Assembly: GCA_051530055.1 (NCBI GenBank) | Contig: JBMGUZ010000032.1 | Location: forward strand, 1 to 30,220 | DNA length: 30,220 nt | Reading direction: 5' to 3' | Source of the DNA: Neoechinorhynchus agilis | Taxonomy: Eukaryota > Animalia > Acanthocephala | Shown: piece by piece, positions 1-27,749 of the stretch | Layout: the number at the start of each line of letters is the position of its first letter | How positions within the stretch are numbered: the first letter of the stretch is position 1 | The notes under the pieces: model-generated | The model's input: only the letters and a program-made list of their open reading frames with translations | Databases searched by the model: none | What the model was told of the DNA's origin: nothing | Position numbers and translations under genes: made by a program

Positions 1-3000
1 AATCAATGCGGCGATTTATTGTCGCAGATAGATACGAGCGGTGTCACTTTATTGTTTTTCGCGGACTACAACACAATTTTCTATCATTGCCGTAAAGTGC
101 ATTTAATATTCTTATTGTTCGTGTGCAACTTCATTGTTTACGTCATGTTCTGAATCAATGCGGCTATTTATTGTCGCAGATAGATACGAGCGGTGTCACT
201 TTATTGTTTTTCGCTAACTACAACACAATTTTCTTGCTTTGCCGTCGATTGCATTTAATATTCTTATTGTTCGTGTGCAACTTCATTGTTTACGTCATGT
301 TCTGAATCAATGCGGCTATTTATTGTCGCAGATAGATACGAGCGGTGTCACTTTATTGTTTTTCGCTAACTACAACACAATTTTCTTGCTTTGCCGTCGA
401 TTGCATTTAATATTCTTATTGTTCGTGTGCAACTTCATTGTTTACGTCATGTTCTGAATCAATGCGGCGATTTATTGTCGCAGATAGATACGAGCGGTGT
501 CACTTTATTGTTTTTCGCGGACTACAACACAATTTTCTTTCATTGCCGTCAAGTGCATTGAATATTCTTATTGTTCGTGTGCAACTTCATTGTTTACGTC
601 ATGTTCTGAATCAATGCGGCTATTTATTGTCGCAGATAGATACGAGCGGTGTCACTTTATTGTTTTTCGCTAACTACAACACAATTTTCTTGCTTTGCCG
701 TCGAGTGCATTTAATATTCTTATTGTTCGTGTGCAACTTCATTGTTTACGTCATGTTCTGAATCAATGCGGCGATTTATTGTCGCAGATAGATACGAGCG
801 GTGTCACTTTATTGTTTTTCGCGGACTACAATACAATTTTCTTGCTTTGCCGTCAATTGCATTTAATATTCTTATTGTTCGTGTGCAACTTCATTGTTTA
901 CGTCATGTTCTGAATCAATGCGGCTATTTATTGTCGCAGAAAGATACGAGCGGTGTCACTTTATTGTTTTTCGCTAACTACAACACAATTTTCTTGCTTT
1001 GCCGTCAAGTGCATTTAATATTCTTATTGTTCGTGTGCAACTTCATTGTTTACGTCATGTTCTGAATCAATGCGGCTATTTATTGTCGCAGATAGATACG
1101 AGCGGTGTCACTTTATTGTTTTTCGCTAACTACAACACAATTTTCTTGCTTTGCCGTCAAGTGCATTTAATATTCTTATTGTTCGTGTGCAACTTCATTG
1201 TTTACGTCATGTTCTGAATCAATGCGGCGATTTATTGTCGCAGATAGATACGAGCGGTGTCACTTTATTGTTTTTCGCGGACTACAACACAATTTTCTTG
1301 CTTTGCCGTCAAGTGCATTTAATATTCTTATTGTTCGTGTGCAACTTCATTGTTTACGTCATGTTCTGAATCAATGCGGCGATTTATTGTCGCAGATAGA
1401 TACGAGCGGTGTCACTTTATTGTTTTTCGCTAACTACAACACAATTTTCTTGCTTTGCCGTCAAGTGCATTTAATATTCTTATTGTTCGTGTGCAACTTC
1501 ATTGTTTACGTCATGTTCTGAATCAATGCGGCGATTTATTGTCGCAGATAGATACGAGCGGTGTCACTTTATTGTTTTTCGCTAACTACAACACAATTTT
1601 CTTTCATTGCCGTAAAGTGCATTGAATATTCTTATTGTTCGTGTGCAACTTCATTGTTTACGTCATGTTCTGAATCAATGCGGCTATTTATTGTCGCAGA
1701 TAGATACGAGCGGTGTCACTTTATTGTTTTTCTGTAACTACAACACAATTTTCTTGCTTTGCCGTCAAGTGCATTTAATATTCTTATTGTTCGTGTGCAA
1801 CTTCATTGTTTACGTCATGTTCTGAATCAATGCGGCTATTTATTCCCGCAGATAGATACGAGCGGTGTCACTTTATTGTTTTTCGCTAACTACAACACAA
1901 TTTTCTTGCTTTGCCGTCAAGTGCATTTAATATTCTTATTGTTCGTGTGCAACTTCATTGTTTACGTCATGTTCTGAATCAATGCGGCGATTTATTGTCG
2001 CAGATAGATACGAGCGGTGTCACTTTATTGTTTTTCGCTGACTACAACACAATTTTCTTGCTTTGCCGTCAAGTGCATTGAATATTCTTATTGTTCGTGT
2101 GCAACTTCATTGTTTACGTCATGTTCTGAATCAATGCGGCGATTTATTGTCGCAGAAAGATACGAGCGGTGTCACTTTATTGTTTTTCTGTAACTACAAC
2201 ACAATTTTCTTTCATTGCCGTCAAGTGCATTGAATATTCTTATTGTTCGTGTGCAACTTCATTGTTTACGTCACGTTCTGAATCAATGCGGCGATTTATT
2301 GTCGCAGATAGATACGGGCGGTGTCACTTTATTGTTTTTCGCGGACTACAACACAATTTTCTTGCTTTGCCGTCAAGTGCATTGAATATTCTTATTGTTC
2401 GTGTGCAACTTCATTGTTTACGTCATGTTCTGAATCAATGCGGCGATTTATTGTCGCAGATAGATACGAGCGGTGTCACTTTATTGTTTTTCGCTAACTA
2501 CAACACAATTTTCTTGCTTTGCCGTCAAGTGCATTGAATATTCTTATTGTTCGTGTGCAACTTCATTGTTTACGTCATGTTCTGAATCAATGCGGCGATT
2601 TATTGTCGCAGAAAGATACGAGCGGTGTCACTTTATTGTTTTTCTGTAACTACAACACAATTTTCTTGCTTTGCCGTCAAGTGCATTTAATATTCTTATT
2701 GTTCGTGTGCAACTTCATTGTTTACGTCATGTTCTGAATCAATGCGGCTATTTATTGTCGCAGATAGATACGAGCGGTGTCACTTTATTGTTTTTCTGTA
2801 ACTACAACACAATTTTCTTGCTTTGCCGTCAAGTGCATTTAATATTCTTATTGTTCGTGTGCAACTTCATTGTTTACGTCATGTTCTGAATCAATGCGGC
2901 TATTTATTGTCGCAGATAGATACGAGCGGTGTCACTTTATTGTTTTTCTGTAACTACAACACAATTTTCTTGCTTTGCCGTCAATTGCATTTAATATTCT

Positions 3001-6000
3001 TATTGTTCGTGTGCAACTTCATTGTTTACGTCATGTTCTGAATCAATGCGGCTTGTTATTGTCGCAGAAAGATACGAGCGGTGTCACTTTATTGTTTTTC
3101 TGTAACTACAACACAATTTTCTATCATTGCCGTAAAGTGCATTGAATATTCTTATTGTTCGTGTGCAACTTCATTGTTTACGTCATGTTCTGAATCAATG
3201 CGGCTATTTATTGTCGCAGATAGATACGAGCGGTGTCACTTTATTGTTTTTCGCTAACTACAACACAATTTTCTTGCTTTGCCGTCGATTGCATTTAATA
3301 TTCTTATTGTTCGTGTGCAACTTCATTGTTTACGTCATGTTCTGAATCAATGCGGCTATTTATTGTCGCAGATAGATACGAGCGGTGTCACTTTATTGTT
3401 TTTCGCTAACTACAACACAATTTTCTTGCTTTGCCGTCAAGTGCATTGAATATTCTTATTGTTCGTGTGCAACTTCATTGTTTACGTCATGTTCTGAATC
3501 AATGCGGCGATTTATTGTCGCAGATAGATACGAGCGGTGTCACTTTATTGTTTTTCGCTGACTACAACACAATTTTCTTGCTTTGCCGTCAAGTGCATTG
3601 AATATTCTTATTGTTCGTGTGCAACTTCATTGTTTACGTCATGTTCTGAATCAATGCGGCGATTTATTGTCGCAGATAGATACGAGCGGTGTCACTTTAT
3701 TGTTTTTCGCTAACTACAACACAATTTTCTTGCTTTGCCGTCAAGTGCATTTAATATTCTTATTGTTCGTGTGCAACTTCATTGTTTACGTCATGTTCTG
3801 AATCAATGCGGCGATTTATTGTCGCAGATAGATACGAGCGGTGTCACTTTATTGTTTTTCGCGGACTACAACACAATTTTCTTGCTTTGCCGTCAAGTGC
3901 ATTGAATATTCTTATTGTTCGTGTGCAACTTCATTGTTTACGTCATGTTCTGAATCAATGCGGCTATTTATTGTCGCAGATAGATACGAGCGGTGTCACT
4001 TTATTGTTTTTCGCTAACTACAACACAATTTTCTTGCTTTGCCGTCAAGTGCATTTAATATTCTTATTGTTCGTGCAACTTCATTGTTTACGTCATGTTC
4101 TGAATCAATGCGGCGATTTATTGTCGCAGATAGATACGAGCGGTGTCACTATTGTTTTTCTGTAACTACAACACAATTTTCTATCATTGCCGTAAAGTGC
4201 ATTGAATATTCTTATTGTTCGTTTGCAACTTCATTGTTTACGTCATGTTCTGAATCAATGCGGCTTGTTATTGTCGCAGAAAGATACGAGCGGTGTCACT
4301 TTATTGTTTTTCTGTAACTATAACACAATTTTATATCATTGCCGTAAAGTGCATTGAATATTCTTATTGTTCGTGCTCAACTTCATTGTTTACGTCACGT
4401 TCTGAATCAATGCGGCGATTTATTGTCGCAGATAGATACGAGCGGTGTCACTTTATTGTTTTTCGCGGACTACAATACAATTTTCTTGCTTTGCCGTCGA
4501 TTGCATTTAATATTCTTATTGTTCGTGTGCAACATCATTGTTTACGTCATGTTCTGAATCAATGCGGCGATTTATTGTCGCAGATAGATACGAGCGGTGT
4601 CACTTTATTGTTTTTCGCGGACTACAATACAATTCTCTTGCTTTGCCGTCAAGTGCATTGAATATTCTTATTGTTCGTGTGCAACTTCATTGTTTACGTC
4701 ATGTTCTGAATCAATGCGGCGATTTATTGTCGCAGAAAGATACGAGCGGTGTCACTTTATTGTTTTTCGCGGACTACAACACAATTTTCTTGCTTTGCCG
4801 TCGAGATCATTTAATATTCTTATTGTTCGTGTGCAACTTCATTGTTTGCGTCATGTTCTGAATCAATGCGGCGATTTATTGTCGCAGAAAGATACGAGCG
4901 GTGTCACTTTATTGGTTTTCTGTAACTACAACACAATTTTCTATCATTGCCGTAAAGTGCATTGAATATTCTTATTGTTCGTGTGCAACTTCATTGTTTA
5001 CGTCACGTTCTGAATCAATGCGGCGATTTATTGTCGCAGAATAGATACGGGCGGTGTCACTTTATTGTTTTTCGCGGACTACAATACAATTTTCTTGCTT
5101 TGCCGTCATGTGCATTGAATATTCTTATTGTTCGTGTGCAACTTCATTGTTTACGTCATGTTCTGAATCAATGCGGCGATTTATTGTCGCAGATAGATAC
5201 GAGCGGTGTCACTTTATTGTTTTTCGCTAACTACAACACAATTTTCTTGCTTTGCCGTCAAGTGCATTGAATATTCTTATTGTTCGTGTGCAACTTCATT
5301 GTTTACGTCATGTTCTGAATCAATGCGGCGATTTATTGTCGCAGAAAGATACGAGCGGTGTCACTTTATTGTTTTTCGCGGACTACAATACAATTTTCTT
5401 GCTTTGCCGTCAAGTGCATTTAATATTCTTATTGTTCGTGTGCAACTTCATTGTTTACGTCATGTTCTGAATCAATGCGGCTATTTATTGTCGCAGATAG
5501 ATACGAGCGGTGTCACTTTATTGTTTTTCGCTAACTACAACACAATTTTCTTGCTTTGCCGTCAAGTGCATTTAATATTCTTATTGTTCGTGTGCAACTT
5601 CATTGTTTACGTCATGTTCTGAATCAATGCGGCGATTTATTGTCGCAGAAAGATACGAGCGGTGTCACTTTATTGTTTTTCGCGGACTACAATACAATTT
5701 TCTTGCTTTGCCGTCAAGTGCATTTAATATTCTTATTGTTCGTGTGCAACTTCATTGTTTACGTCACGTTCTGAATCAATGCGGCGATTTATTGTCGCAG
5801 ATAGATACGAGCGGTGTCACTTTATTGTTTTTCGCGGACTACAATACAATTTTCTTGCTTTGCCGTAAAGTGCATTTAATATTCTTATTGTTCGTGCTCA
5901 ACTTCATTGTTTTCGTCATGTTCTGAATCAATGCGGCTATTTATTGTCGCAGATAGATGCGAGCGGTGTCACTTTGTTTTTATGTAACTACAACACAATT

Positions 6001-9000
6001 TTCTTGCTTTGCCGTCAATTGCATTTAAAATTCTTATTGTTCGTGTGCCACTTCATTGTTTACGTCATGTTCTGAATCAATGCGGCTTGTTATTGTCGCA
6101 GAAAGATACGAGCGGTGTCACTTTATTGTTTTTCTGTAACTACAACACAATTTTCTATCATTGCCGTAAAGTGCATTGAATATTCTTATTGTTCGTGTGC
6201 AACTTCATTGTTTACGTCATGTTCTGAATCAATGCGGCTATTTATTGTCGCAGATAGATACGAGCGGTGTCACTTTATTGTTTTTCGCTAACTACAACAC
6301 AATTTTCTTGCTTTGCCGTCGATTGCATTTAATATTCTTATTGTTCGTGTGCAACTTCATTGTTTACGTCATGTTCTGAATCAATGCGGCGATTTATTGT
6401 CGCAGATAGATACGAGCGGTGTCACTTTATTGTTTTTCGCTAACTACAACACAATTTTCTTGCTTTGCCGTCAAGTGCATTGAATATTCTTATTGTTCTT
6501 GTGCAACTTCATTGTTTACGTCATGTTCTGAATCAATGCGGCGATTTATTGTCGCAGAAAGATACGAGCGGTTTCACTTTATTGTTTTTCGCGGACTACA
6601 ATACAATTTTCTTGCTTTGCCGTCAAATGCATTGAATATTCTTATTGTTCGTGTGCAACTTCATTGTTTACGTCATGTTCTGAATCAATGCGGCTATTTA
6701 TTGTCGCAGATAGATACGAGCGGTGTCACTTTATTGTTTTTCGCTAACTACAACACAATTTTCTTGCTTTGCCGTCAAGTGCATTTAATATTCTTATTGT
6801 TCGTGTGCAACTTCATTGTTTACGTCATGTTCTGAATCAATGCGGCGATTTATTGTCGCAGATAGATGCGAGCGGTGTCACTTTTGTTTTTCTGTAACTA
6901 CAACACAATTTTCTTGCTTTGCCGTCAATTGCATTTAAAATTCTTATTGTTCGTGTGCCACTTCATTGTTTACGTCATGTTCTGAATCAATGCGGCTTGT
7001 TATTGTCGCAGAAAGATACGAGCGGTGTCACTTTATTGTTTTTCTGTAACTACAACACAATTTTCTATCATTGCCGTAAAGTTCATTGAATATTCTTATT
7101 GTTCGTGTGCAACTTCATTGTTTACGTCATGTTCTGAATCAATGCGGCTATTTATTGTCGCAGATAGATACGAGCGGTGTCACTTTATTGTTTTTCGCTA
7201 ACTACAACACAATTTTCTTGCTTTGCCGTCGATTGCATTTAATATTCTTATTGTTCGTGTGCAACTTCATTGTTTACGTCATGTTCTGAATCAATGCGGC
7301 TTGTTATTGTCGCAGAAAGATACGAGCGGTGTCACTTTATTGTTTTTCTGTAACTACAACACAATTTTCTATCATTGCCGTAAAGTGCATTGAATATTCT
7401 TATTGTTCGTGTGCAACTTCATTGTTTACGTCATGTTCTGAATCAATGCGGCTATTTATTGTCGCAGATAGATACGAGCGGTGTCACTTTATTGTTTTTC
7501 GCTAACTACAACACAATTTTCTTGCTTTGCCGTCGATTGCATTGAATATTCTTATTGTTCGTGCGCAACTTCATTGTTTACGTCATGTTCTGAATCAATG
7601 CGGCTATTTATTGTCGCAGATAGATACGAGCGGTGTCACTTTATTGTTTTTCGCTAACTACAACACAATTTTCTTGCTTTGCCGTCGATTGCATTTAATA
7701 TTCTTATTGTTCGTGTGCAACTTCATTGTTTACGTCATGTTCTGAATCAATGCGGCGATTTATTGTCGCAGATAGATACGAGCGGTGTCACTTTATTGTT
7801 TTTCGCGGACTACAATACAATTCTCTTGCTTTGCCGTCAAGTGCATTGAATATTCTTATTGTTCGTGTGCAACTTCATTGTTTACGTCATGTTCTGAATC
7901 AATGCGGCGATTTATTGTCGCAGATAGATACGAGCGGTGTCACTTTATTGTTTTTCGCGTACTGCAACACAATTTTCTTGCTTTGCCGTCAAGTGCATTT
8001 AATATTCTAATTGTTCGTGTGCAACTTCATTGTTTACGTCACGTTCTGAATCAATGCGGCGATTTATTGTCGCAGATAGATACGAGCGGTGTCACTTTAT
8101 TGTTTTTCGCGGACTACAATACAATTCTCTTGCTTTGCCGTCAAGTGCATTGAATATTCTTATTGTTCGTGTGCAACTTCATTGTTTACGTCACGTTCTG
8201 AATCAATGCGGCGATTTATTGTCGCAGAATAGATACGAGCGGTGTCACTTTATTGGTTTTCTGTAACTACAACACAATTTTCTATCATTGCCGTAAAGTG
8301 CATTGAATATTCTTATTGTTCGTGTGCAACTTCATTGTTTACGTCACGTTCTGAATCAATGCGGCGATTTATTGTCGCAGAATAGATACGGGCGGTGTCA
8401 CTTTATTGTTTTTCGCGGACTACAATACAATTTTCTTGCTTTGCCGTCATGTGCATTGAATATTCTTATTGTTCGTGTGCAACTTCATTGTTTACGTCAT
8501 GTTCTGAATCAATGCGGCGATTTATTGTCGCAGATAGATACGAGCGGTGTCACTTTATTGTTTTTCGCTAACTACAACACAATTTTCTTGCTTTGCCGTC
8601 AAGTGCATTGAATATTCTTATTGTTCGTGTGCAACTTCATTGTTTACGTCATGTTCTGAATCAATGCGGCGATTTATTGTCGCAGAAAGATACGAGCGGT
8701 GTCACTTTATTGTTTTTCGCGGACTACAACACAATTTTCTTGCTTTGCCGTCAAGTGCATTGAATATTCTTATTGTTCGTGTGCAACTTCATTGTTTACG
8801 TCATGTTCTGAATCAATGCGGCGATTTATTGTCGCAGATAGATACGAGCGGTGTCACTTTATTGTTTTTCGCTAACTACAACACAATTTTCTTGCTTTGC
8901 CGTCAAGTGCATTTAATATTCTTATTGTTCGTGTGCAACTTCATTGTTTACGTCATGTTCTGAATCAATGCGGCTATTTATTGTCGCAGATAGATACGAG

Positions 9001-11692
9001 CGGTGTCACTTTATTGTTTTTCGCTAACTACAACACAATTTTCTTGCTTTGCCGTCAAGTGCATTTAATATTCTTATTGTTCGTGTGCAACTTCATTGTT
9101 TACGTCATGTTCTGAATCAATGCGGCGATTTATTGTCGCAGATAGATACGAGCGGTGTCACTTTTGTTTTTCTGTAACTACAACACAATTTTCTATCATT
9201 GCCGTAAAGTGCATTGAATATTCTTATTGTTCGTGTAACTTCATTGTTTACGTCATGTTTAATCAATGCGGCTATTTATTGTCGCAGATAGATACGAGCG
9301 GTGTCACTTTATTGTTTTTCGCTAACTACAACACAATTTTCTTGCTTTGCCGTCAATTGCATTTAATATTCTTATTGTTCGTGTGCAACTTCATTGTTTA
9401 CGTCATGTTCTGAATCAATGCGGCGATTTATTGTCGCAGATAGATACGAGCGGTGTCACTTTATTGTTTTTCGCGGACTACAATACAATTTTCTTGCTTT
9501 GCCGTAAAGTGCATTTAATATTCTTATTGTTCGTGTGCAACTTCATTGTTTACGTCATGTTCTGAATCAATGCGGCTATTTATTGTCGCAGATAGATACG
9601 AGCGGTGTCACTTTATTGTTTTTCTGTAACTACAACACAATTTTCTATCATTGCCGTAAAGTGCATTGAATATTCTTATTGTTCGTGTGCAACTTCATTG
9701 TTTACGTCATGTTCTGAATCAATGCGGCTATTTATTGTCGCAGATAGATACGAGCGGTGTCACTTTATTGTTTTTCGCTAACTACAACACAATTTTCTTG
9801 CTTTGCCGTCAAGTGCATTTAATATTCTTATTGTTCGTGTGCAACTTCATTGTTTACGTCATGTTCTGAATCAATGCGGCGATTTATTGTCGCAGATAGA
9901 TACGAGCGGTGTCACTTTATTGTTTTTCGCGGACTACAATACAATTTTCTTGCTTTGCCGTAAAGTGCATTTAATATTCTTATTGTTCGTGTTCAACTTC
10001 ATTGTTTACGTCATGTTCTGAATCAATGCGGCTATTTATTGTCGCAGATAGATACGAGCGGTGTCACTTTATTGTTTTTCTGTAACTACAACACAATTTT
10101 CTATCATTGCCGTAAAGTGCATTTAATATTCTTATTGTTCGTGTGCAACTTCATTGTTTACGTCATGTTCTGAATCAATGCGGCGATTTATTGTCGCAGA
10201 TAGATACGAGCGGTGTCACTTTATTGTTTTTCGCTAACTACAACACAATTTTCTTGCTTTGCCGTCAAGTGCATTTAATATTCTTATTGTTCGTGTGCAA
10301 CTTCATTGTTTACGTCACGTTCTGAATCAATGCGGCGATTTATTGTCGCAGATAGATACGAGCGGTGTCACTTTATTGTTTTTCGCGGACTACAATACAA
10401 TTTTCTTGCTTTGCCGTAAAGTGCATTTAATATTCTTATTGTTCGTGTTCAACTTCATTGTTTACGTCATGTTCTGAATCAATGCGGCTATTTATTGTCG
10501 CAGATAGATACGAGCGGTGTCACTTTATTGTTTTTCTGTAACTACAACACAATTTTCTATCATTGCCGTAAAGTGCATTGAATATTCTTATTGTTCGTGT
10601 GCAACTTCATTGTTTACGTCATGATCTGAATCAATGAGGCTATTTGTTCGCGCAGATAGATACGAGCGGTGTCACTTTATTGTTTTTCGCTAACTACAAC
10701 ACAATTTTCTTGCTTTGCAGTCGAGTGCATTTAATATTCTTATTGTTCGTTTGCAACTTCATTGTTTACGCCATGTTCTGAATCAATGCGGCGATTTATT
10801 GTCGCAGAAAGATACGAGCGGTGTCACTTTATTGGTTTTCTGTAACTACAACACAATTTTCTTGCTTTGCCGTCAAGTGAATTTAATATTCTTATTGTTC
10901 GTGTGCAACTTCATTGTTTACGTCATGTTCTGAATCAATGCGGCGATTTATTGTCGCAGAAAGATACGAGCGGTGTCACTTTATTGTTTTTCTGTAACTA
11001 CAACACAATTTTCTTTCATTGCCGTAAAGTGCATTTAATATTCTTATTGTTCGTGTGCAACTTCATTGTTTACGTCATGTTCTGAATCAATGCGGCTATT
11101 TATTGCCGCAGAAAGATACGAGCGGTGTCACTTTATTGTTTTTCTGTAACTACAACACAATTTTCTTGCTTTGCCGTCAATTGCATTTAATATTCTTATT
11201 GTTCGTGTGCAACTTCATTGTTTACGTCATGTTCTGAATCAATGCGGCGATTTATTGTCGCAGATAGATACGAGCGGTGTCACTTTATTGTTTTTCGCTA
11301 ACTACAACACAATTTTCTTTCATTGCCGTCAAGTGCATTGAATATTCTTATTGTTCGTGTTCAACTTCATTGTTTACGTCATGTTCTGAATCAATGCGGC
11401 GATTTATTGTCGCAGATAGATACGAGCGGTGTCACTTTATTGTTTTTCTGTAACTACAACACAATTTTCTATCATTGCCGTAAAGTGCATTGAATATTCT
11501 TATTGTTCGTGTACAACTTCATTGTTTACGTCATGTTCTGAATCAATGCGGCTATTTATTGTCGCAGAAAGATACGAGCGGTGTCACTTTATTGTTTTTC
11601 TGTAACTAAAACACAATTTTCTTGCTTTGCCGTCAAGTGCATTGAATATTCTTATTGTTTGTGGTCAACTTCATTGTTTACGTCATGTTCTG
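1..11692. repeat. Tandem satellite, 152-bp unit, about 77 copies, continuing beyond the left edge of the window
   Basis: Unit aatcaatgcggcgatttattgtcgcagatagatacgagcggtgtcactttattgtttttcgcggactacaacacaattttcttgctttgccgtcaagtgcattgaatattcttattgttcgtgtgcaacttcattgtttacgtcatgttctg recurs every 152 bp. Differences are concentrated at a few diagnostic sites (gcga/gcta/gcttg; cgcgg/cgcta/ctgta; cttgct/ctatca). The last intact gttctg ends at 11692. Confidence 0.99.
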
Positions 11693-11830
11693 TGATGTGC
11701 CATAGTTTTGTTCATCGGCTTTAAATCTGCTCCTTTTCTTTTTTCTTCTGTGACTGGTGAACAAGTTGCTTATTGTGCCGACACTGAAATGAATGTCTGT
11801 ATTGTTGTAGCGGAAGGTTGATGTTCGCGA
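11693..11830 (-). pseudogene. Degenerate edge unit of the satellite / coding repeat
   Basis: 11747-11806 aligns to the coding repeat at about 41/61 nt (e.g. versus 14331-14391). The minus strand reads AQ*ATCSPVTE, versus DQQAACAPVTN/ITE in the protein. Confidence 0.65.
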
Positions 11831-12065
11831 CAAGTACGCATTTGAATTGTAATTTATCTACTCAATTTTTAGATCGTATCTTAAAGGGGGAAAATGCGTT
11901 TTAAAGATTCGAATGAAGTTTATACAAATAGAGATAAGAAACATCAAAAAGCTAAATATTTTAAACTTCAATTTGCAAAATTTATATTATGAATCTTTAG
12001 TCTTGCACAGTAGACATGCAACATTGTATTTGATTCGCCAGCGGAAAAATAACAATGATTTTTAT

Positions 12066-15000
12066 TTAGTCGTCGCTTAATATCTGGTTTAACAAATTAT
12101 CTTCATCGGAGTCTTCATCGCTGTCAAATTGACTCTCCTCTGGATTTCCGTTTGTATTATTAGTCGCGTCATTTTCCTGGTCCTCCTCGGTGTTATCGTT
12201 TTTCCTCGGACTGTCAGCGATCCCCAACGCTGCTCGTATCGCGTCCTCTAGTTGAAGAGTTTCAGCATCCTTTGGTTTTCGTATTACCTCCGCCGGTGGT
12301 TCGGATGGTGGTAATTCCTCACGAACGGATTGGGGTGTCATCTCGCCACCTTCAGAATAATCTTCTTCTTCGGATTGTTCTCCTTCTGGAGTGCAAGGGC
12401 GAAAAAGTATGTTTTCTAGGAACATGTTATCAGTTTGATTAGCATCAACGCTCATATAGCTTTCGGCCGGACTGGTAGCCGAAGCGCTTGAAGATAGATT
12501 AAGTTCCTCTATCGATCGAGGATATTCTAAAATGTACTGCGCGAGCGTTGCCTCGTCGAACTGAGATGATCCGTTAAATTGATCCTTTGTTTCAACTCCA
12601 ACTGGAATGGGTATATGTTGCTCAGATTCAAATTGTTCATTGATCTTGTGATATTGTTGGTGGTGTTCAGTTTGGGGCTCCTGCTGGTTTATCGGTCCAA
12701 AGTTAACATCGGGAGAAAAATTGAAGTTATCACGATCGTTGTCTGGCGCTTCAAATGAAAAATAGTGCTCGTGTTCGACGTTTGGCCGACGATATCTATC
12801 TAAATCTTCATTGGCAATCTCATATCTATCAGCCGACAATGTATTAAATATAGTCCCCCTTTGCTCATCGTGTAGATTTACGGTGTCATCCAGCTGCAGT
12901 TCAGCGGCACTTCGAGTTTCATTCTCTGCTCTAATCTGATTATTTTCTAATCGTTCTCCGGTCAGATGAGATTTCTGCTCGTTTAGCAACCGGAAATTTT
13001 CTTGGTAATCCTCATCATTAAGCCCAACTTTATCCGAAAAATTACGCTGGTTGCTTTCGTGTGCCCCCTTGATTTCAGCTTCAATATTTGGTTCAGGACA
13101 CATCTTTTGCTTTTTAGGTGGATGACATTCCGAAACGTCGTGTGTCCTTTTAGTGCTTTGTTTATCGGAAAAAATTTGGTGGCTCCGTATTGATTTTTGT
13201 TCACACATCTGCTCATTCGACTTCGCCGTTTCATCAGTTACCTTATTCGAGGACAGATCTGCTGCTTGACAGTTTTGTACGCCCGTCATATTTTCTCTTT
13301 GCGTACAATTAATTTTTTGCATTTTGCTTAATTCCTTATAATTATCGGTGCCTTCATATTGCCTTTTCATTGCCGTTATTGAATTTTGATTGAATCGTTT
13401 TTGGCCACTCGCCGATCGATCATCGCCATCCTTATTGATCATTGAAGCACAGTTCATTGAATATCCTTGCTGTTTGCGTGGAACTTCATTCTTAACCTCA
13501 GTGTTCTGATTTGGCGCCGCTATTTCGTGTTGTTGATAAAAATGCGCCGTCGTAATGTTTTGTGGATTGGTTACTGGGGCACAAGCCGCTTGCTGATCCT
13601 GCAAGTCCATTGAATATCCTTGCTGCTCGCGTTGATCTTCATTGTTAACCTCAGTGTTCAGATTTTGCGCCGCTATTTCGGTTTGTTGATAGAGACCCGC
13701 CGTCGCCATGTTTTGTGTATTGGTGACTGGGGCACAAGCCGCTTGCTGATCCTGCAAGTGCATTGAATATCCTAGCTGTTCGCGTTGATCTTCATTATTT
13801 ATCCCAATGTTCTGATTTGGCGCCGCTATTTCGTGTTGTTGATAGAAACCCGCCGTCGCCATGTTTTGTGGTTCGGTGATTGGAGCACAAGCCGCTTGCT
13901 GATCCTGCAAGTGCATTGAATATCCTTGTTGTTCGCGTGGATCCTCATTGTTTACGCCAGTGTTCAGATGAGGTGCCGCTATTTCGAATTGTTGATAGAG
14001 ACCCGCCGTCGCCATGTTTTGTGTATTGGTGACTGGGGCACAAGCCGCTTGCTGATCCTGCAAGTGCATTGAATATCCTAGCTGTTCGCGTTGATCTTCA
14101 TTATTTATCCCAATGTTCTGATTTGGCGCCGCTATTTCGTGTTGTTGATAGAAACCCGCCGTCGCCATGTTTTGTGGTTCGGTGATTGGAGCACAAGCCG
14201 CTTGCTGATCCTGCAAGTCCATTGAATATCCTTGCTGCTCGCGTTGATCTTCATTGTTAACCTCAGTGTTCAGATTTTGCGCCGCTATTTCGGTTTGTTG
14301 ATAGAAACCAGCCGTCGCCATGTTTTGTGGTTCGGTGATTGGAGCACAAGCCGCTTGCTGATCCTGCAAGTGCATTGAATATCCTTGTTGTTCGCGTGGA
14401 TCCTCATTGTTTACGCCAGTGTTCGGATGAGGTGCCGCTATTTCGAATTGTTGATAGAAACCCGCCGTCGCCATGTTTTGTGTATTGGTGACTGGGGCAC
14501 AAGCCGCTTGCTGATCCTGCAAGTCCATTGAATATCCTTGCTGCTCGCGTTGATCTTCATTGTTAACCTCAGTGTTCAGATTTTGCGCCGCTATTTCGGT
14601 TTGTTGATAGAAACACGCTGCCGCCATGTTTTGTTGAACGGTTACTTGAGCACAAAGCGCTTGCTGATCCTGCAAGTGCATTGAATATCCTTGTTGTTCG
14701 CGTGGAACTTGATTGTTTACCCCAGTGTTCGGATGAAGTGCCGCCATTTCGAATTGTTGATAGAAACCCGCCGTCGCCATGTTTTGTGTATTGGTGACTT
14801 GGGCACAAGCCGCTTGCTGATCCTTCAAGTGCATTGAATATCCTTGCTGTTCGCGTTGATCTTCATTGTTAACCTCAGTGTTCTGATTTGGCGCCGCTAT
14901 TTCGTGTTGTTGATAAAAACCTGCTGTTGCCATTTTTTGTGGATTGGTTACTTGGGCACGAGCCGCTTGCTGGCCATGCAAGTTTATTGAATATCCTTGT

Positions 15001-16532
15001 TGTTCGCGCGGAACTCTATTGTTTACGTCTGCGTTCTTATTAGGTGCCGCTATTTGGTGTTGAGGATAGTAGCCCGCGGTTGCCATGTTATGTTGATCGG
15101 TGAATGGAGCACAAGCCGTTTGCTGGTCCTGCAAGTGCATTGAATATCCTCGTTGTTCGCGTTGAACTCTATTGTTTACGTCCGGGTTCTGATTGGGTGC
15201 CGCTATTTGGTGTTGTTGATGGAAACCCGCTGCCGCCATGTTTTGTTGATCGGTGAATGGAGCACAAGCCGCTTGCTGGCCCTGCAAGTGCATTGAATAT
15301 CCTTGTTTTTCGCGTAGAGCTCTATTGTTTACGTCAGCGCTCTGATTAGGTGCCACTACTTGGTGTTGTTGATGGAAACCCGCTGCCGCCATGTTTTGTT
15401 GATCGGTGAATGGAGCACAAGCTGGTTGCTGGCCTTGCAAGTGCATTGTAAATCCTTGTTGTTCGCGTGAAACTGTATTGTTTACGTGAGCGTTCTGGTT
15501 AGGTGCCGCTATTTGGTGTTGAGGATTGTAACTCGCGGTTGCCATGTTTTGTTGATCGGTGAATGGAGCACAAGCCGCTTGCTGGCCATGCAAATTAATT
15601 GAATATCCTTGTTGTTCGCGTGAAACTCTATTGTTTACGTCAGCGTTCTGATTAGGTGCCACTATTTGGTGTTGTGGATAGTAGCCCGCGGTTGCCATGT
15701 TTTGTCGATCGGTACCACTAATCATTCGAACAGGATTTGCCATCAATGTAGGATGTATGTTTTGGCCACTATTTCCAAAATTTAATCGTTCTGTTGGCGG
15801 TTGTTGTTCTTGCTGCCATTGTTGCTGATATTGAGCAGGCTGTTGTTGGTTGTTCATCTGAGTTCCGTAGTTATGCACTCCCGATGGGTCTTGGGCATTT
15901 TGCAATGTTCCAATATTTTGGAGAGCTGGGTTATGGTAAATGTTTTGCGGATTGCCGTTTCCTTTAATAAAATTCTGAGCTGTCATCATGGGATTTGGCT
16001 GTTGCATTTGCTGCGTGCCGTAAAGGTGACCCGTATTGCCGAATTGTTGGAAATTTTGGTTTTGGAAGGCATTTGCATTGGTTATCGGACCCAAATTTTG
16101 TTGGAAATGCCCTTGCACATTCGGGTTGTAGAAATTTCCTTGAGCATACGGTGCCATAACAGCGGCTCCATTTCCACCAGCCGCAACAGCATATGGTACG
16201 GCACCATCGTAGGTAAGATTTTGAGCTTGAAATTCGTCCCTGTTCCTTAGACGACCATCCTGATAGCATCCATTGACAGCCCAGTGCATTCCTCTAGGAC
16301 CGTGAGATACTCTTACCCGTATAAACTTATTGCTCACAGATAATGTATGGCGAACTGAGTTTTGCCAACTTTTTACTTCCTTCTCGTCAGTTATTGCGGC
16401 AAAATAGGGATAATTCTGTTTAAAATAATCGTAAATCTTTTGTAGTGGCAGTGTGCGATTAGGAGCGTTGCTGATCGCCAACCTGGCTATTTCGGAAATG
16501 CTTATATCTCCCCACGCATTATGTCTCGGCAT
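12066..16532 (-). CDS. Divergent FoxO-like forkhead transcription factor with a 51-aa tandem repeat region and acidic C-terminus (1488 aa, single uninterrupted ORF)
   Basis: The N-terminus RHNAWGDISISEIARLAISNAPNRTLPLQKIYDYFKQNYPYFAAITDEKEVKSWQNSVRHTLSVSNKFIRV...HWAVN matches the FoxO pattern RNAWGNLSY...[31 protein letters not shown]...WWMLN. It includes the FoxO-specific 11-residue YF-to-W spacing. The 4.4-kb frame has no stops, and an in-frame TGA lies 9 codons upstream of the ATG. This is a paralog rather than canonical FoxO, so no symbol is given. Confidence 0.9.
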   Translation of the reverse strand: MPRHNAWGDISISEIARLAISNAPNRTLPLQKIYDYFKQNYPYFAAITDEKEVKSWQNSVRHTLSVSNKFIRVRVSHGPRGMHWAVNGCYQDGRLRNRDEFQAQNLTYDGAVPYAVAAGGNGAAVMAPYAQGNFYNPNVQGHFQQNLGPITNANAFQNQNFQQFGNTGHLYGTQQMQQPNPMMTAQNFIKGNGNPQNIYHNPALQNIGTLQNAQDPSGVHNYGTQMNNQQQPAQYQQQWQQEQQPPTERLNFGNSGQNIHPTLMANPVRMISGTDRQNMATAGYYPQHQIVAPNQNADVNNRVSREQQGYSINLHGQQAACAPFTDQQNMATASYNPQHQIAAPNQNAHVNNTVSREQQGFTMHLQGQQPACAPFTDQQNMAAAGFHQQHQVVAPNQSADVNNRALREKQGYSMHLQGQQAACAPFTDQQNMAAAGFHQQHQIAAPNQNPDVNNRVQREQRGYSMHLQDQQTACAPFTDQHNMATAGYYPQHQIAAPNKNADVNNRVPREQQGYSINLHGQQAARAQVTNPQKMATAGFYQQHEIAAPNQNTEVNNEDQREQQGYSMHLKDQQAACAQVTNTQNMATAGFYQQFEMAALHPNTGVNNQVPREQQGYSMHLQDQQALCAQVTVQQNMAAACFYQQTEIAAQNLNTEVNNEDQREQQGYSMDLQDQQAACAPVTNTQNMATAGFYQQFEIAAPHPNTGVNNEDPREQQGYSMHLQDQQAACAPITEPQNMATAGFYQQTEIAAQNLNTEVNNEDQREQQGYSMDLQDQQAACAPITEPQNMATAGFYQQHEIAAPNQNIGINNEDQREQLGYSMHLQDQQAACAPVTNTQNMATAGLYQQFEIAAPHLNTGVNNEDPREQQGYSMHLQDQQAACAPITEPQNMATAGFYQQHEIAAPNQNIGINNEDQREQLGYSMHLQDQQAACAPVTNTQNMATAGLYQQTEIAAQNLNTEVNNEDQREQQGYSMDLQDQQAACAPVTNPQNITTAHFYQQHEIAAPNQNTEVKNEVPRKQQGYSMNCASMINKDGDDRSASGQKRFNQNSITAMKRQYEGTDNYKELSKMQKINCTQRENMTGVQNCQAADLSSNKVTDETAKSNEQMCEQKSIRSHQIFSDKQSTKRTHDVSECHPPKKQKMCPEPNIEAEIKGAHESNQRNFSDKVGLNDEDYQENFRLLNEQKSHLTGERLENNQIRAENETRSAAELQLDDTVNLHDEQRGTIFNTLSADRYEIANEDLDRYRRPNVEHEHYFSFEAPDNDRDNFNFSPDVNFGPINQQEPQTEHHQQYHKINEQFESEQHIPIPVGVETKDQFNGSSQFDEATLAQYILEYPRSIEELNLSSSASATSPAESYMSVDANQTDNMFLENILFRPCTPEGEQSEEEDYSEGGEMTPQSVREELPPSEPPAEVIRKPKDAETLQLEDAIRAALGIADSPRKNDNTEEDQENDATNNTNGNPEESQFDSDEDSDEDNLLNQILSDD
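13452..15713 (-). repeat. Coding tandem repeat, 153 bp / 51 aa, about 15 units
   Basis: Example unit FTDQQNMAAAGFHQQHQIAAPNQNPDVNNRVQREQRGYSMHLQDQQTACAP. The 153-bp period is confirmed by ttgtttac at 15631, 15478, 15325, 15172 and 15019. Confidence 0.97.
16272..16532 (-). other. Forkhead (winged-helix) DNA-binding domain, FoxO subfamily
   Basis: NAWG start motif; recognition helix W-Q-N-S-V-R-H-T-L-S retains the Asn, Arg, His and Ser used for base contacts in FOX proteins; KFIRV and W-x-x-N strands are present. Confidence 0.92.
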
Positions 16533-18068: not shown

Positions 18069-18725
18069 TTAAAATCCACCTGTGTAGTTCCTCTTTGTTC
18101 TATTACACAAACTTCCCAGATCCATCTCTTCACCACCCGGAACCGCCGCAAGGACACTTGCAGCGTTGCCGCGCTGGATCGCGAGACCTATGTTTTGCAG
18201 GAAGGACGTTCCTGCTCTTGGGTCTCCGGTTGCGATCCTCATCTTCCTTGAAAGATCCGCCGTAAAGTTCTTGGCCTCAGCACCGAAGGCACCGAGCGTC
18301 TCAACGCCGAAAGGGACGAAGTGATGTGCCCTCAAGAGCTCCGCGTACTTCCCGCGCTTGCGTTCCTCTGCGGCAATTGCAGCACCTCCTTCGCGCCTTG
18401 AGGGGACAGGGAAAGGGTGTCCACCCCAGAGAAGGGATTTCCCTTCTGGCCACGGGAACACAGTTATCTCGTCCGGTCTCCGACCGTCGAGTCTGCAGAG
18501 GTGACTCGGTTCGAGCAGATTCGGTGCGTGTATCGTGTTTAAGGCCTGACTAATAACCGAGTTAATCTCAGCGTGGCGAGCATACCTGCCACCGGACTGG
18601 CGACAGACGAGACCGTGTCTACCCAAAGAATCCACAAGGGCCCCACAACGACAGTAGTGTGGGACACAAATCGGGAGACCTAGTCGTAAGGACACTGCGA
18701 TCCTTGATTTCATTCCACGCAGTAT
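18069..18725 (-). mobile_element. 5'-truncated CRE-clade non-LTR retrotransposon fragment (CCHC zinc knuckle plus restriction-like endonuclease)
   Basis: LRLGLPICVPHYCRCG..GRHGLVC..GGRYARHAEIN..RRPDEITVFPW..FVPFGVETLGAFG..LAIQRGNAASVL. It lacks the D-x-x-C-V-D-T segment seen in the 25318 copy, consistent with an internal deletion. Confidence 0.85.
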
Positions 18726-19102: not shown

Positions 19103-19591
19103 ATGGCGACTGCTCGTAAAAAACAACCGAGACGAAGTGATCGTCAAATCGCTAAGATAAACTTGGAGTTTTGTAAGTTTTACCTCATTCTCTCATGCAT
19201 TGACAGTTTACTGTTGGTGCTTCAAATTGGATGGGCCACCTACTTCAAGGCTGGAGTAACACCATTTGAAAAAGGTCTCTATGGTTCAACCGCGATAACT
19301 TGTTGGTTATCGTTTTTATTCCTAAGATGGCTAGGAAATCCGGCATCAAGTCATAACGTTGATCTGTCGGATTCTTTTATTGGCGATTTCTTCAAGGACG
19401 TGATTATATGGAATCTGGCTGTTCATTCATTGACAATGGTAACCATATACGCATGGATATTGTGGATATTCGTTCCAGCTCGCTTCTTATTTGTTGCCTA
19501 CAACGCTCTTGTCGTTCCTTGGAAAAGTGCTAATCAATTAGTGGATACCTCTGATAGTCCGCAAAAAGGAAAAATTCGTAAAAAAACTTAA
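19103..19591 (+). CDS. TMEM208: TMEM208/SND2-like membrane protein (DUF788), divergent, intronless, 162 aa
   Basis: RQIAKINLEFCKFYL resembles KQIFEENRETLKFYL. VDLSDSFIGDFFKDVIIWNLAVHSLTMVTIYAWILWIFVPARFLFVAYNALVVPW resembles [56 protein letters not shown] (human TMEM208 recalled from memory). Hydrophobic segments and a basic C-terminal tail are present. Confidence 0.8.
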   Translation: MATARKKQPRRSDRQIAKINLEFCKFYLILSCIDSLLLVLQIGWATYFKAGVTPFEKGLYGSTAITCWLSFLFLRWLGNPASSHNVDLSDSFIGDFFKDVIIWNLAVHSLTMVTIYAWILWIFVPARFLFVAYNALVVPWKSANQLVDTSDSPQKGKIRKKT

Positions 19592-22900: not shown

Positions 22901-24030
22901 TGGATGTGTATTCTCAATAGCGAATTGTAACACACTCGAGTTTTACTGAACTCTTCATTGGGAATTTTTAAGGCCACAGCCCATCGAGTGGATGTCTATT
23001 CTCAATGGCGAATTGTTACACATTCGAATTTTATTGAACTTTTCATTGCGAATTTTCAAGCCTCAGCCCTTCGAGTGGATGTCTATTCTCAATGGCGAAT
23101 TGTAACACATTCGAATTTTATTGAACTGTTCATTGCGAATTTTCAATACCTCAGCCCTTCGAGTGGATGTGTATTCTCAATAGCGAATTGTAACACACTC
23201 GAGTTTTACTGAACTCTTCATTGGGAATTTTGAAGGCCACCATCGAGTGGATGTCTATTCTCAATGGCGAATTGTAACACACTCGAGTTTTACTGAACTC
23301 TTCATTGCGAATTTTCAAGCCTCAGCCCTTCGAGTGGATGTGTATTCTCAATGGCGAATTGTAACACATTCGAATTTTATTGAACTCTTCATTGCGAATT
23401 TTCTAGGCCTCAGCCCTTCGAGTGGATGTGTATTCTCAATAGCGAATTGTAACACACTCGAGTTTTATTGAACTCTTCATTGCGAATTTTCAAGCCTCAA
23501 CCCTTCGAGTGGATGTGTATTCTCAATAGCGAATTGTAACACACTCGAATTTTATTGAACTCTTCGTTGCGAATTTTCAATACCTCAGCTCTTCGAGTGA
23601 ATGTGTATTCTCAATGGCGAAGTGTAACACACTCGAGTTTTATTGAACTCTTCATTGCGAATTTTGTAGGCCTCAGCCCTTCGAGTGGATGTGTATTCTC
23701 AATAGCGAATTGTAACACCCTCGAGTTTTATTGAACTCTTCATTGCGAATTTTCAAGCCTCAGCCCTCCGAGTGGACTTGTATTCTCAATAGCGAATTGT
23801 AACACACTCGAGTTTTACTGAACTCTTCATTGCGAATTTTCAAGGCATCAGCCCTTCGAGTGGATGTGTATTATCAATGGGGAATTGTAACACACTCGAG
23901 TTTTATTGAACTCTTCATTGCGAATTTTCAAGGCCTCAGCCCTTCGAGTGGATGTGTATTCTCAATTGCGAATTGTAACACACTCGAGTTTTATTGAACT
24001 CTTCATTGTGAATTTTCAAGGCCTCAGCCT
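19921..24030. repeat. Tandem satellite/minisatellite, 88-bp unit (some 87 bp), about 46 copies
   Basis: Unit tcgagtggatgtgtattctcaatggcgaattgtaacacactcgagttttactgaactcttcattgcgaattttcaaggcctcagccct, with starts at 20013, 20101 and 20189. Indel-rich stretches occur near 20810-20960 and 21860-22260. Confidence 0.98.
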
Positions 24031-27379: not shown

Positions 27380-27749
27380 TCATTCAATTTTAGACAATCC
27401 CTTTCTTGTCCGGCTTATTTATTTAGGCATAAAGCCAAACCAATTACATCAGAGAAGTGGTGTAACCACATAGTCTCTAATGCACGGTTAAGAGTTTGTA
27501 CATTCCTCCGGATCCTCAGATACCTCCAGGAGGCGGGACTCATCCGTGAGTTTCCTCCCTTCAGCGGTATTTCGTCCCCTTTGGCTGTGCGTCATTGGTG
27601 GTAACGGATTCGAACCACTTGACCCCTAATCGGGATCATGGGCATTAGTCCACTTGACCACCTCGACACAACTACGAAATGTCAAACCCAGCCAGTTCAT
27701 CGGCTCAGGGATAGCGCCGTGTTCAAAAATAAAAATAAAAATAAAAAAA
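27380..27749 (+). mobile_element. 370-bp retroposed insertion with A-rich tail and 12-bp target-site duplication, inside the CRE RT region
   Basis: TSD agttgaaaagga at 27368-27379 and 27750-27761; tail caaaaataaaaataaaaataaaaaaaa. Removing the insert rejoins the CRE sequence ...PQH(L)KDMMSFSTGEA. Confidence 0.88.
27595..27667 (-). mobile_element. tRNA(Leu/Ser)-derived SINE head with Pol III A and B boxes; not a functional tRNA
   Basis: The minus strand reads gtcgagg TGGTCAAGTGGactaatgc...gtGGTTCGAATCCgttaccacca. The D-arm resembles tRNA-Leu TGGCCGAGTGGTCTAAGGC and the B box is a perfect match. The acceptor stem does not pair. Confidence 0.7.

Follow-up and report, generated by a model that had tools for sequence, protein, structure and literature searches.

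The main finding of this analysis is that a 152-bp satellite of the acanthocephalan Neoechinorhynchus agilis is probably a decayed, amplified and non-coding derivative of the coding repeat of the gene next to it, and that the ~75 perfect DAF-16/FoxO binding elements of the array would be one inherited site multiplied. This origin was missed in an earlier sequence-only reading of the same DNA, which had proposed a self-referential system of a FoxO paralog binding its own gene body and an amplified array. The window analyzed here comprises 30,220 nucleotides and is an entire unplaced contig of N. agilis; its features are listed in Table 1. The satellite array is cut by the contig end and has the same orientation as the gene.

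Table 1. Features of the satellite and the FoxO-like gene in the window (positions on the forward strand)
Feature	Position	Strand	Basis or remark
152-bp satellite, 77 monomers	1..11692	-	TRF, 77.0 copies, 94% matches; 75 monomers carry TTGTTTAC
Unique spacer, 373 bp, between stop codon and satellite	11693..12065	-	98.9% identical to the spacer downstream of P0001
Putative FoxO-like gene, uninterrupted ORF, 1488 aa	12066..16532	-	ORF analysis, Pfam
Tandem 153-bp (51-codon) coding repeats, 14.8 copies, consensus QNTDVNNEDQREQQGYSMHLQDQQAACAPVTDPQNMATAGFYQQHEIAAPN	13451..15713	-	TRF
Forkhead (winged-helix) DNA-binding domain, aa 10-88, FoxO class	16269..16505	-	Pfam PF00250, FOXO structures
Recognition helix N58-S-V-R61-H62-T-L-S65	16338..16361	-	N-x-x-R-H-x-x-S kept

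Homology between the satellite and the coding repeat

Long head-to-tail stretches of near-identical, non-coding monomers make up the satellite, which is present at more than one locus. Its unit is homologous to the 51-codon repeat of the gene along the full length and in register. An alignment of the satellite consensus with each coding unit showed 63-68% identity across all 152 bp with a single 1-bp indel, and the two consensus sequences are 70.7% identical over 300 bp (E = 2e-37, z = 15.5 versus shuffles). A blastn comparison aligned the coding repeats of P0001, a paralog on chromosome CM121341.1, with the window satellite over more than 4 kb at ~65%. Translated in the homologous frame, the satellite unit gives EHDVNNEVAHEQ*EY*MHLTAKQ... 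and the coding unit QNTDVNNEDQREQQGYSMHLQDQQ...; the satellite contains four stop codons in this frame and has a period of 152 instead of 153 bp, one base pair having been lost. Substitutions from the coding repeat to the satellite comprise 23 GC-to-AT versus 8 AT-to-GC changes, and the G+C content is 0.37 in the satellite versus 0.46-0.48 in the coding repeat. Loss of the reading frame and drift towards A+T are directly visible in the satellite.

In the course of events that we propose, a block of coding repeats would have been copied into the flank of the gene in the same orientation. This block would then have lost one base and the reading frame and drifted towards A+T, before unequal crossing-over amplified and homogenized it into an array. 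The shared sites and the adjacency of gene and satellite would both follow from descent and local duplication. We infer that the coding repeat came first, how the array was amplified and that any forkhead binding to it is incidental.

Homology alone carries no direction, and the direction of descent was judged without a true outgroup. An existing 152-bp satellite could thus have been exonized into the gene, gaining one base per unit to become a 51-codon repeat, and the observation that the satellite is about equidistant (62-70% identity) from all 77 coding units compared, indicating an old split, would fit such an order of events. Nevertheless, we consider it very unlikely, since the founder unit must have shed four stop codons and gained exactly 1 bp, and the substitution bias fits G+C-richer coding DNA decaying towards an A+T-rich background. 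Moreover, old degenerate units at the array edges are in frame and retain VNN..EQQGYSM. All three paralogs contain the coding repeat, while the satellite was found at two loci with nearly identical flanks out of the three examined.

A predicted FoxO-class protein and its paralogs

The gene next to the array appears to encode a diverged FoxO-class forkhead paralog, in agreement with the sequence-only reading. The predicted protein consists of the forkhead domain, a Q/N-rich linker, ~15 tandem 51-aa repeats (755 residues) and a 460-aa acidic C-terminal region. In the deposited annotation, the gene model has 1507 aa, compared with 1488 aa for the ORF, and may include a short additional 5′ exon, judging by its likeness to P0001. 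Forkhead is the only Pfam match over the whole protein (PF00250; E = 2.8e-16, 59.8 bits with a cutoff of 27), and the FOXO KIX-binding and transactivation domains of Pfam are absent. The C-terminal 460 aa gave no match above threshold in the domain search, and the 51-aa repeat matched no known domain in Pfam or the PDB.

Among solved structures, FOXO3, FOXO4 and FOXO1 match the forkhead domain best (58-59 bits, E ~5e-15, ungapped over aa 3-88), versus at most 43 bits for FOXK and the other Fox classes, and the loop between H2 and H3 is of FoxO length. Relatives of the domain were also sought by an exhaustive HMMER search: the single-domain full-length matches in a representative library come from tick, mite and nematode and carry the name Forkhead box protein O. 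The domain is 41-42% identical to the FoxO-like proteins P0038 and P0047 of N. agilis, and the closest match in a library of 1.84 billion proteins reaches at most 43% identity. The base-contacting residues N58, R61, H62 and S65 of helix 3, whose retention had been pointed out before, are kept both here and in P0001 (NYVRHKLS). The Akt/PKB motif RxRxx[S/T] is found neither in the 1488-aa protein nor in P0001 or P0038, while the tick FoxO used as a control has two. At the 3′ end of the gene, AATAAA at 12062-12067 on the minus strand shares bases with the TAA stop codon, and the mRNA therefore probably ends before the satellite array. A TMEM208 gene is the neighbor of the forkhead gene on the window contig.

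The window gene is a member of a lineage-specific, fast-evolving FoxO-derived family with at least three long paralogs, and a canonical-looking FoxO (P0038) is present elsewhere in the genome. The proteins of this family share an N-terminal forkhead domain followed by 15 to 31 tandem Q/N-rich 51-residue repeats and an acidic tail. Because of the long ORFs (1488 and 2212 codons) and a dN/dS of ~0.3 for the forkhead domain among paralogs, we regard them as real coding genes; between coding repeat units, omega is ~0.66-0.69. The layout of gene and satellite recurs through duplication: at the P0001 locus, the satellite is located both upstream (~52 units) and downstream (~49 units), co-oriented with the gene. 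A further paralog, at L006, has no satellite within the DNA examined. Forkhead genes, FoxO and satellites are not mentioned in the text of the genome paper and one of its supplements (PMC12690905), and we found no prior description of acanthocephalan forkhead genes in the literature.

The window contig and the chromosomal loci

A comparison of sequence identities revealed that two chromosomal loci are combined in the window contig as a mosaic. Upstream of the gene and over the initial 491 nt of the CDS, the contig is 100% identical to a chromosomal locus at 9.72 Mb, whereas the C-terminal CDS (99.6%) and the spacer (98.9%) resemble the P0001 locus, to which the N-terminal CDS is only 94.8% identical. 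The assembly is a hybrid of Illumina and ONT reads from a pool of 50 worms (PMC12690905), and copy numbers and single variants in the contig may therefore be imperfect. These observations would be compatible with an assembly artefact, that is, a chimeric contig in which the 5′ part of the 9.72-Mb locus was joined to the 3′ part and satellite of a locus at 4.73 Mb. That the juxtaposition of gene and satellite arose in this way is, however, extremely unlikely: the chromosome-scale scaffold shows the same layout of gene and satellite at P0001, which makes the biology independent of the window contig, and the repeat arrays differ in size (15 units in the window versus 29 in P0001). In addition, a retrotransposon (at least 6.9 kb) breaks the chromosomal copy at 9.72 Mb at codon 164, so that the window plausibly represents the uninterrupted allele.

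A perfect FoxO element in nearly every monomer

The 8-mer TTGTTTAC occurs 84 times in the window, every time on the plus strand, while it appeared 2.26 times on average, and never more than 6 times, in 100 shuffles that preserved the dinucleotides. Seventy-five sites are located in the satellite (first at 134-141, last at 11674-11681), eight in the coding repeat (13948, 14407, 14713, 15019, 15172, 15325, 15478 and 15631), and a stray one is found at 29036. The sequence-only reading had described the element as occurring once per satellite unit, in eight coding units and in two mutated copies; all of these were recovered, the coding sites at exactly the positions given before and the changed copies as TTGTTTGC at 4842 and TTGTTTTC at 5907. 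Its description of the coding sites as the antisense of VNN codons was also correct, as the gene-strand form GTAAACAA is read as GTA-AAC-AAT (V-N-N). The secondary forkhead-like motif (TGTTTTT, the antisense of AAAAACA) and the overlapping CRE-like site (TTACGTCA) that had been reported are each present in 74 satellite units.

Since all units are homologous, the 84 sites do not represent 84 events, and their excess reflects one ancestral occurrence plus amplification. Based on the homology of satellite and coding repeat, the sites trace to one ancestral GTA-AAC-AAT that was copied by array expansion: each monomer would carry a perfect DAF-16/FoxO element because the ancestral coding unit wrote Val-Asn-Asn with these codons. 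Likewise, the overlapping TGACGTAA would derive from Asp-Val codons and AAAAACAA from the Gln-Asn-Met region. The chance of finding the exact 8-mer in one 152-bp unit is ~1%, as calculated from 2.26 occurrences per 30.2 kb. Its presence in the founder was thus a ~1% event, and the fact that it matches the consensus site of the very protein class to which the gene belongs is a real coincidence, which counts against our interpretation.

Conservation of the element and possible forkhead binding to the array

Nothing shows that the ~75 FoxO sites were selected as binding sites. Among the 77 monomers of the window, 24 of 145 8-mer windows are as conserved as the motif or more, as are 22 of 145 among 172 monomers from three arrays; for circular windows the corresponding fractions are 0.06, 0.14 and 0.28 with three statistics. 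These values come from arrays in which concerted evolution leaves little power to detect selection, with 97 of the 152 columns (64%) invariant in the window. The 8-mer does not clearly vary less than neighboring positions of the satellite, which is essentially the outcome that the sequence-only reading had itself counted against its proposal.

The coding repeats show no DNA-level constraint on the site. V-N-N is retained in 12 of the 15 window coding units but the site in only 8 (P0001 count, 18/26). The Val codon of the motif ends in A in 51 of 75 coding units and in T in 14 (major fraction, 0.78), which places this base among the more variable synonymous positions, most of which are at 0.92-1.0. 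The change from GTA to GTT abolishes the site in 14 of 65 units. An odd choice of the Val codon as a sign of DNA-level selection was rejected, as GTA accounts for 8 of the 24 Val codons (33%) outside the repeats. Promoter autoregulation was also discarded: no perfect DBE was found within ~2 kb upstream of the three paralogs, where the density of the core motif is ordinary. Together with the probable origin of the satellite as a decayed coding repeat, the variable synonymous base and the lack of a perfect upstream site argue against the selected self-referential binding system proposed earlier.

The first 58 nt of the sense unit, which hold the site, are the least diverged part of the unit. Here the consensus sequences of satellite and coding repeat differ at 12% of positions versus 39% elsewhere (Fisher p = 4e-4). 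Base composition was rejected as the sole cause because it accounts for only part of this difference, which persists weakly within the G/C (p = 0.04) and A/T (p = 0.02) site classes. With old degenerate units of the coding repeat taken as approximate outgroups, the satellite branch still looks slower in this block (~3/57 versus 17/95). The low divergence may stem from gene conversion or from constraint at the protein level on VNN..EQQGYSMHL in the coding repeat, and constraint on this ~58-bp block within the satellite may also contribute.

Alternatively, this block could reflect a working forkhead platform of the kind suggested by the sequence-only reading, in which the FoxO-like protein or P0038 binds the site of each unit and selection maintains it; the array would then serve as a sink or as a 3′ regulatory element, or it would seed a Q/N-rich condensate. 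Of ~178 monomers in three arrays, 175 carry the perfect consensus site, and 74 of 77 units have a second site, AAAAACAA, which matches FoxO sites of the insulin-response-element type. Both paralogs retain the recognition residues, purifying selection acts on the forkhead domain (omega ~0.3), and the long Q/N-rich repeat region could multimerize. Transcription factors on satellites have precedents in FOXD3 (PMC8647145) and in TEAD and others (PMC11526998). Despite these points, a platform maintained by selection appears unlikely. The site was inherited from codons and not acquired, it is not clearly better conserved than its neighbors within the arrays, and synonymous change freely removes it from the gene body. 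Furthermore, the low divergence covers ~58 bp instead of the 8-mer, and neutral explanations are available. As a sink the arrays would be modest, adding ~220 perfect sites to ~3,500 chance sites genome-wide (the shuffle rate extrapolated to the 46-Mb genome; PMC12690905), and the paralog at L006 has no satellite nearby in the DNA examined. We also think it improbable that the FoxO-derived family both spawned the arrays and binds them (or that canonical FoxO does), as a self-referential platform for titration or chromatin with selection on the ~58-bp block.

Incidental binding of forkhead proteins to the array would be plausible. Su(Ste)-like silencing by satellite small RNAs was considered and rejected, as no exact match between satellite and CDS is longer than 17-20 nt. 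A literature search on forkhead sites in satellites turned up no prior description.

Implications and comparison with known systems

Satellite families can rarely be followed back to their source. In this case, the parent would lie 1.8 kb away: the in-frame 51-codon repeat of a transcription-factor gene. If our interpretation is correct, coding minisatellites can seed satellites of nucleosome length, and a perfect transcription-factor consensus can multiply ~200-fold without selection on binding, which calls for caution in motif-based readings of satellites. The gene family also deserves some attention: in a parasite genome of 46 Mb, FoxO has been the source of at least three long paralogs that carry Q/N-rich repeats and lack Akt motifs. 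Should the arrays indeed bind forkhead proteins, they would provide a compact natural model for the titration of transcription factors by satellite DNA.

FoxO/DAF-16 factors recognize the DBE TTGTTTAC (PMC2924398), and the site of the repeat is identical to this consensus. The window protein resembles these factors in its FoxO-type forkhead domain, the FoxO-length H2-H3 loop and the N-x-x-R-H-x-x-S helix. Unlike them, it is only ~41% identical to FoxO domains, lacks Akt sites as well as the FOXO KIX and TAD domains, and contains a tandem-repeat region of 755 residues.

Satellites bound by specific factors include alpha satellite with the CENP-B box and satellite III with HSF1 (PMC5615363), mouse major satellite with the forkhead protein FOXD3 (PMC8647145), and HSat3 with TEAD and others (PMC11526998). 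The N. agilis array shares with them about one consensus site per monomer, and one of these precedents is a forkhead protein. In those cases binding was demonstrated experimentally, whereas the N. agilis site is known from sequence and is explained by descent from codons. The CENP-B box, moreover, is conserved amid variable monomers, in contrast to the N. agilis 8-mer, which does not clearly stand out from its flanks.

Known satellites were seeded by the rDNA intergenic spacer, parts of transposable elements or an intron (review PMC5615363), as in the case of the CapA satellite, which arose from an intron (bioRxiv 10.1101/213868). We found no described satellite in the literature that was seeded by an in-frame codon repeat of a neighboring gene. 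The N. agilis satellite would resemble the known cases in its local tandem duplication, the loss of its former role and the subsequent amplification and homogenization of arrays at several loci, and its unit length is likewise close to one nucleosome. It differs in its seed, the in-frame 51-codon repeat of the gene next to it, with a homology that can be read codon by codon. Arrays derived from genes are represented by the D4Z4/DUX4 macrosatellites and Stellate/Su(Ste) of Drosophila, which have kilobase units containing whole genes or large parts of them. As in N. agilis, these arrays share homology with a protein-coding gene and are located close to members of its family; the N. agilis unit, however, corresponds to one internal 51-codon repeat.

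The forkhead gene and its relatives

The window comprises the complete unplaced contig JBMGUZ010000032.1 (assembly GCA_051530055.1) of Neoechinorhynchus agilis, an acanthocephalan fish parasite whose 46.2-Mb genome was assembled with MaSuRCA from Illumina and ONT reads of 50 pooled worms and scaffolded by Hi-C (PMC12690905).

Genes, repeats and retroelement remains in the window
Feature	Position	Strand	Remarks
152-bp satellite	1-11692		TRF: 77.0 copies, 94% matches
Forkhead ORF	12066-16532	minus	1488 residues
153-bp coding repeat	13451-15713		TRF: 14.8 copies
Related retrotransposon ORF	18069-18713	minus	214 aa
TMEM208/SND2 gene	19103-19591	plus	PF05620; intronless
88-bp tandem array	19923-24029		47 copies; higher-order period 263
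Non-LTR retrotransposon remains	25318-28273	minus	reverse transcriptase (PF00078) at 26626-27387; adjacent ORFs in shifted frames
EF-hand gene start	29507-29830	plus	right end of contig

C-terminal to the forkhead domain (residues 10-88; PF00250, E = 2.8e-16), the protein has a linker rich in Q and N, some 15 tandem repeats of 51 residues and an acidic tail. The closest among all PDB sequences are FOXO3, FOXO4 and FOXO1 (E ~5e-15, 58-59 bits), with FOXK, FOXG and FOXA scoring at most 43 bits. The FOXO alignments are gap-free over residues 3-88, so that the FoxO-length H2-H3 loop is retained, and the helix-3 residues N58, R61, H62 and S65 are all present. The gene had been called a FoxO paralog, a name that holds insofar as its forkhead is of the FoxO class. 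When HMMER was run exhaustively against 1.84 billion representative proteins, identity reached at most 43%, and the single-domain, full-length matches were annotated FoxO proteins of ticks, mites and nematodes. Since no Akt motif (RxRxx[S/T]) is present anywhere in the 1488-residue protein and no Pfam domain besides the forkhead was detected, the protein, judged from its sequence, is a FoxO-class forkhead but not a typically regulated FoxO.

A canonical-looking FoxO of N. agilis, P0038 (ACOME3_008746), is encoded on another scaffold, and P0047 is a further diverged FoxO; each is 41-42% identical to the window's forkhead domain. The whole of P0038 contains no RxRxx[S/T] Akt consensus site, compared with two in a tick FoxO; Akt control of FoxO may have been lost or altered in N. 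agilis.

Two paralogs lie near 4.7 Mb on chromosome CM121341.1. One of them, P0001 (2212 aa, ~29 repeats), is flanked by the 152-bp satellite in the orientation of the gene (~52 units upstream, ~49 downstream). The other (locus L006, 7453-15050) has ~31 coding repeats and is split by frame changes over four gene models, owing either to decay into a pseudogene or to long-read indel errors; no 152-bp satellite was found in the DNA examined there (9.6 kb downstream of the repeats). Because dN/dS of the forkhead domain is ~0.3 among three family members and omega among repeat units ~0.66-0.69, the family consists of coding genes with a repeat region under relaxed constraint. We found no earlier description of this gene family or satellite in the literature.

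FoxO elements in the satellite and the coding repeat

The consensus DAF-16/FoxO element is TTGTTTAC (PMC2924398). It occurs 84 times in the window, exclusively on the plus strand: 75 copies in the satellite, eight in coding units, precisely where the sequence-only reading had placed them, and one stray at 29036. Shuffled sequences gave a mean of 2.26 and a maximum of 6. Two variant copies, TTGTTTGC at 4842 and TTGTTTTC at 5907, were identified, and both TTACGTCA, which overlaps the site, and TGTTTTT are found in 74 satellite units. The factual statements of the sequence-only reading thus all hold on recount.

The satellite itself appears to descend from the coding repeat and to have decayed since. 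Its consensus aligns in register and at full length to all 14 complete coding units (63-68% identity, one 1-bp indel) and matches the coding consensus at 70.7% over 300 bp (E = 2e-37; z = 15.5 relative to shuffled sequences). In addition, more than 4 kb of P0001 coding repeats match the window satellite at ~65% (blastn). Translated in the frame that corresponds to the gene, the satellite gives EHDVNNEVAHEQ*EY*MHLTAKQENCVVVSEKQ*SDTARIYLRQ*IAALI, with four stops, and the coding unit QNTDVNNEDQREQQGYSMHLQDQQAACAPVTDPQNMATAGFYQQHEIAAPN; the period of 152 shifts the frame with every unit. GC-to-AT differences from the coding repeat outnumber AT-to-GC differences (23 versus 8), and G+C is 0.37 in the satellite versus 0.46-0.48 in the coding repeat. 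In the coding strand the 8-mer corresponds to the codons GTA-AAC-AAT (V-N-N), TGACGTAA derives from Asp-Val codons, and AAAAACAA of the satellite occupies the position of CAAAACATG (Q-N-M). The homology in register implies that satellite and gene-body sites share one origin. The opposite direction, exonisation of the satellite into the gene, we regard as highly improbable. Since the forkhead gene's stop codon shares bases with an AATAAA, the mRNA probably does not include the array.

Conservation of the FoxO element

Among the 77 window monomers, 97 of the 152 columns are invariant. The motif contains two mismatches, and 24 of 145 windows are equal or better; extending the set to 172 monomers of three arrays gives four mismatches in the motif, with 22 of 145 windows performing equally well or better. 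A circular-window test gave 0.06, 0.14 and 0.28 for three statistics. This comes very near to one of the outcomes that the sequence-only reading named as refuting it, an 8-mer showing no more conservation than the positions around it.

These results also bear on the idea that the satellite is a binding platform selected for the forkhead protein, which we consider unlikely: within the arrays, the 8-mer is not clearly more conserved than its neighbours. In 75 in-frame coding units of three paralogs, Val-5 is encoded 51 times by GTA, an ordinary Val codon in the forkhead gene, and 14 times by GTT, and this synonymous change destroys the site in every case. With a major fraction of 0.78, Val-5 belongs to the more variable synonymous positions, most of which reach 0.92-1.0 elsewhere in the unit. 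No perfect site is present in ~2 kb upstream of any paralog.

Selection would be favoured by the low divergence of the block that holds the element (sense-unit nt 1-58, e.g. window 11635-11692, minus strand), which differs from the coding consensus by 12%, compared with 39% for the rest (Fisher p = 4e-4). Base composition explains part of this difference, with G/C sites changing at two to four times the frequency of A/T sites, but the difference persists within the G/C and A/T classes (p = 0.04 and 0.02). When changes are roughly polarised against old degenerate coding units, they fall on both lineages, and evolution of this block still seems slower on the satellite branch. The effect extends over ~58 bp and not over the 8-mer. 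The block codes for the best-preserved segment of the peptide (VNN..EQQGYSMHL), and slow change on the coding side, possibly together with gene conversion, is sufficient to explain it; a constraint on ~58 bp of the satellite is possible.

Mosaic structure of the contig

A chromosomal locus at 9.72 Mb matches the upstream region and the initial 491 nt of the CDS with 100% identity. At this locus (CM121341.1; L004 1-6937), a non-LTR retrotransposon at least 6.9 kb long, encoding an ORF1 with CCHC knuckles and a reverse transcriptase, breaks the forkhead ORF after codon 164 (window equivalent 16040/16041). The first 164 codons are identical in both copies, and the window looks like the uninterrupted allele. 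The C-terminal CDS (12066-13450) and the 3' spacer (11693-12065) are 99.6% and 98.9% identical to the P0001 locus 5 Mb away (L005 15325-17081), compared with 94.8% for the N-terminal CDS. Because its 5' part matches one locus and its 3' part the other, the contig would be either an uninterrupted allele of the 9.72-Mb locus, homogenised with P0001 in its 3' part by gene conversion or recent paralog exchange, or a chimeric assembly. Our conclusion on the origin of the satellite holds for both, since a chromosome-scale scaffold has the same gene-plus-satellite arrangement. We consider it extremely unlikely that the juxtaposition is an assembly artefact.

In the window, the TMEM208 gene lies 2.6 kb upstream of the forkhead gene in divergent orientation. 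The unrelated 88-bp array, located between TMEM208 and the retrotransposon remains, is also found in the chromosomal copy (45 copies, L004 10821-14769). Beyond the shared region, the chromosome carries another satellite (136-bp unit, 28 copies, L004 16743-20487); this midpoint of the 19.4-Mb chromosome contains many tandem arrays and retroelements.

Origin of the satellite

We consider it likely that the satellite arose by duplication, decay and amplification of the coding repeat. A stretch of coding repeats would have been duplicated into the 3' flank of the gene, lost its frame and drifted towards A+T, while unequal exchange amplified and homogenised it; the satellite would then have travelled along with duplication of the gene block. 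The FoxO element would be a hitch-hiker of the Val-Asn-Asn codons, and the number of sites a measure of array expansion. Local duplication would leave gene and array side by side. The suggested self-referential system, in which the protein binds its own gene body and array, appears weak, given sites that descend from V-N-N codons and no clear extra constraint on the 8-mer. Descent of a satellite from the coding repeat of the gene next to it would be a tidy, somewhat unusual case.

In vitro, a site this perfect may well be bound by forkhead proteins. Satellites are known to attract transcription factors, as with FOXD3 on mouse major satellite (PMC8647145) or TEAD on HSat3 (PMC11526998).
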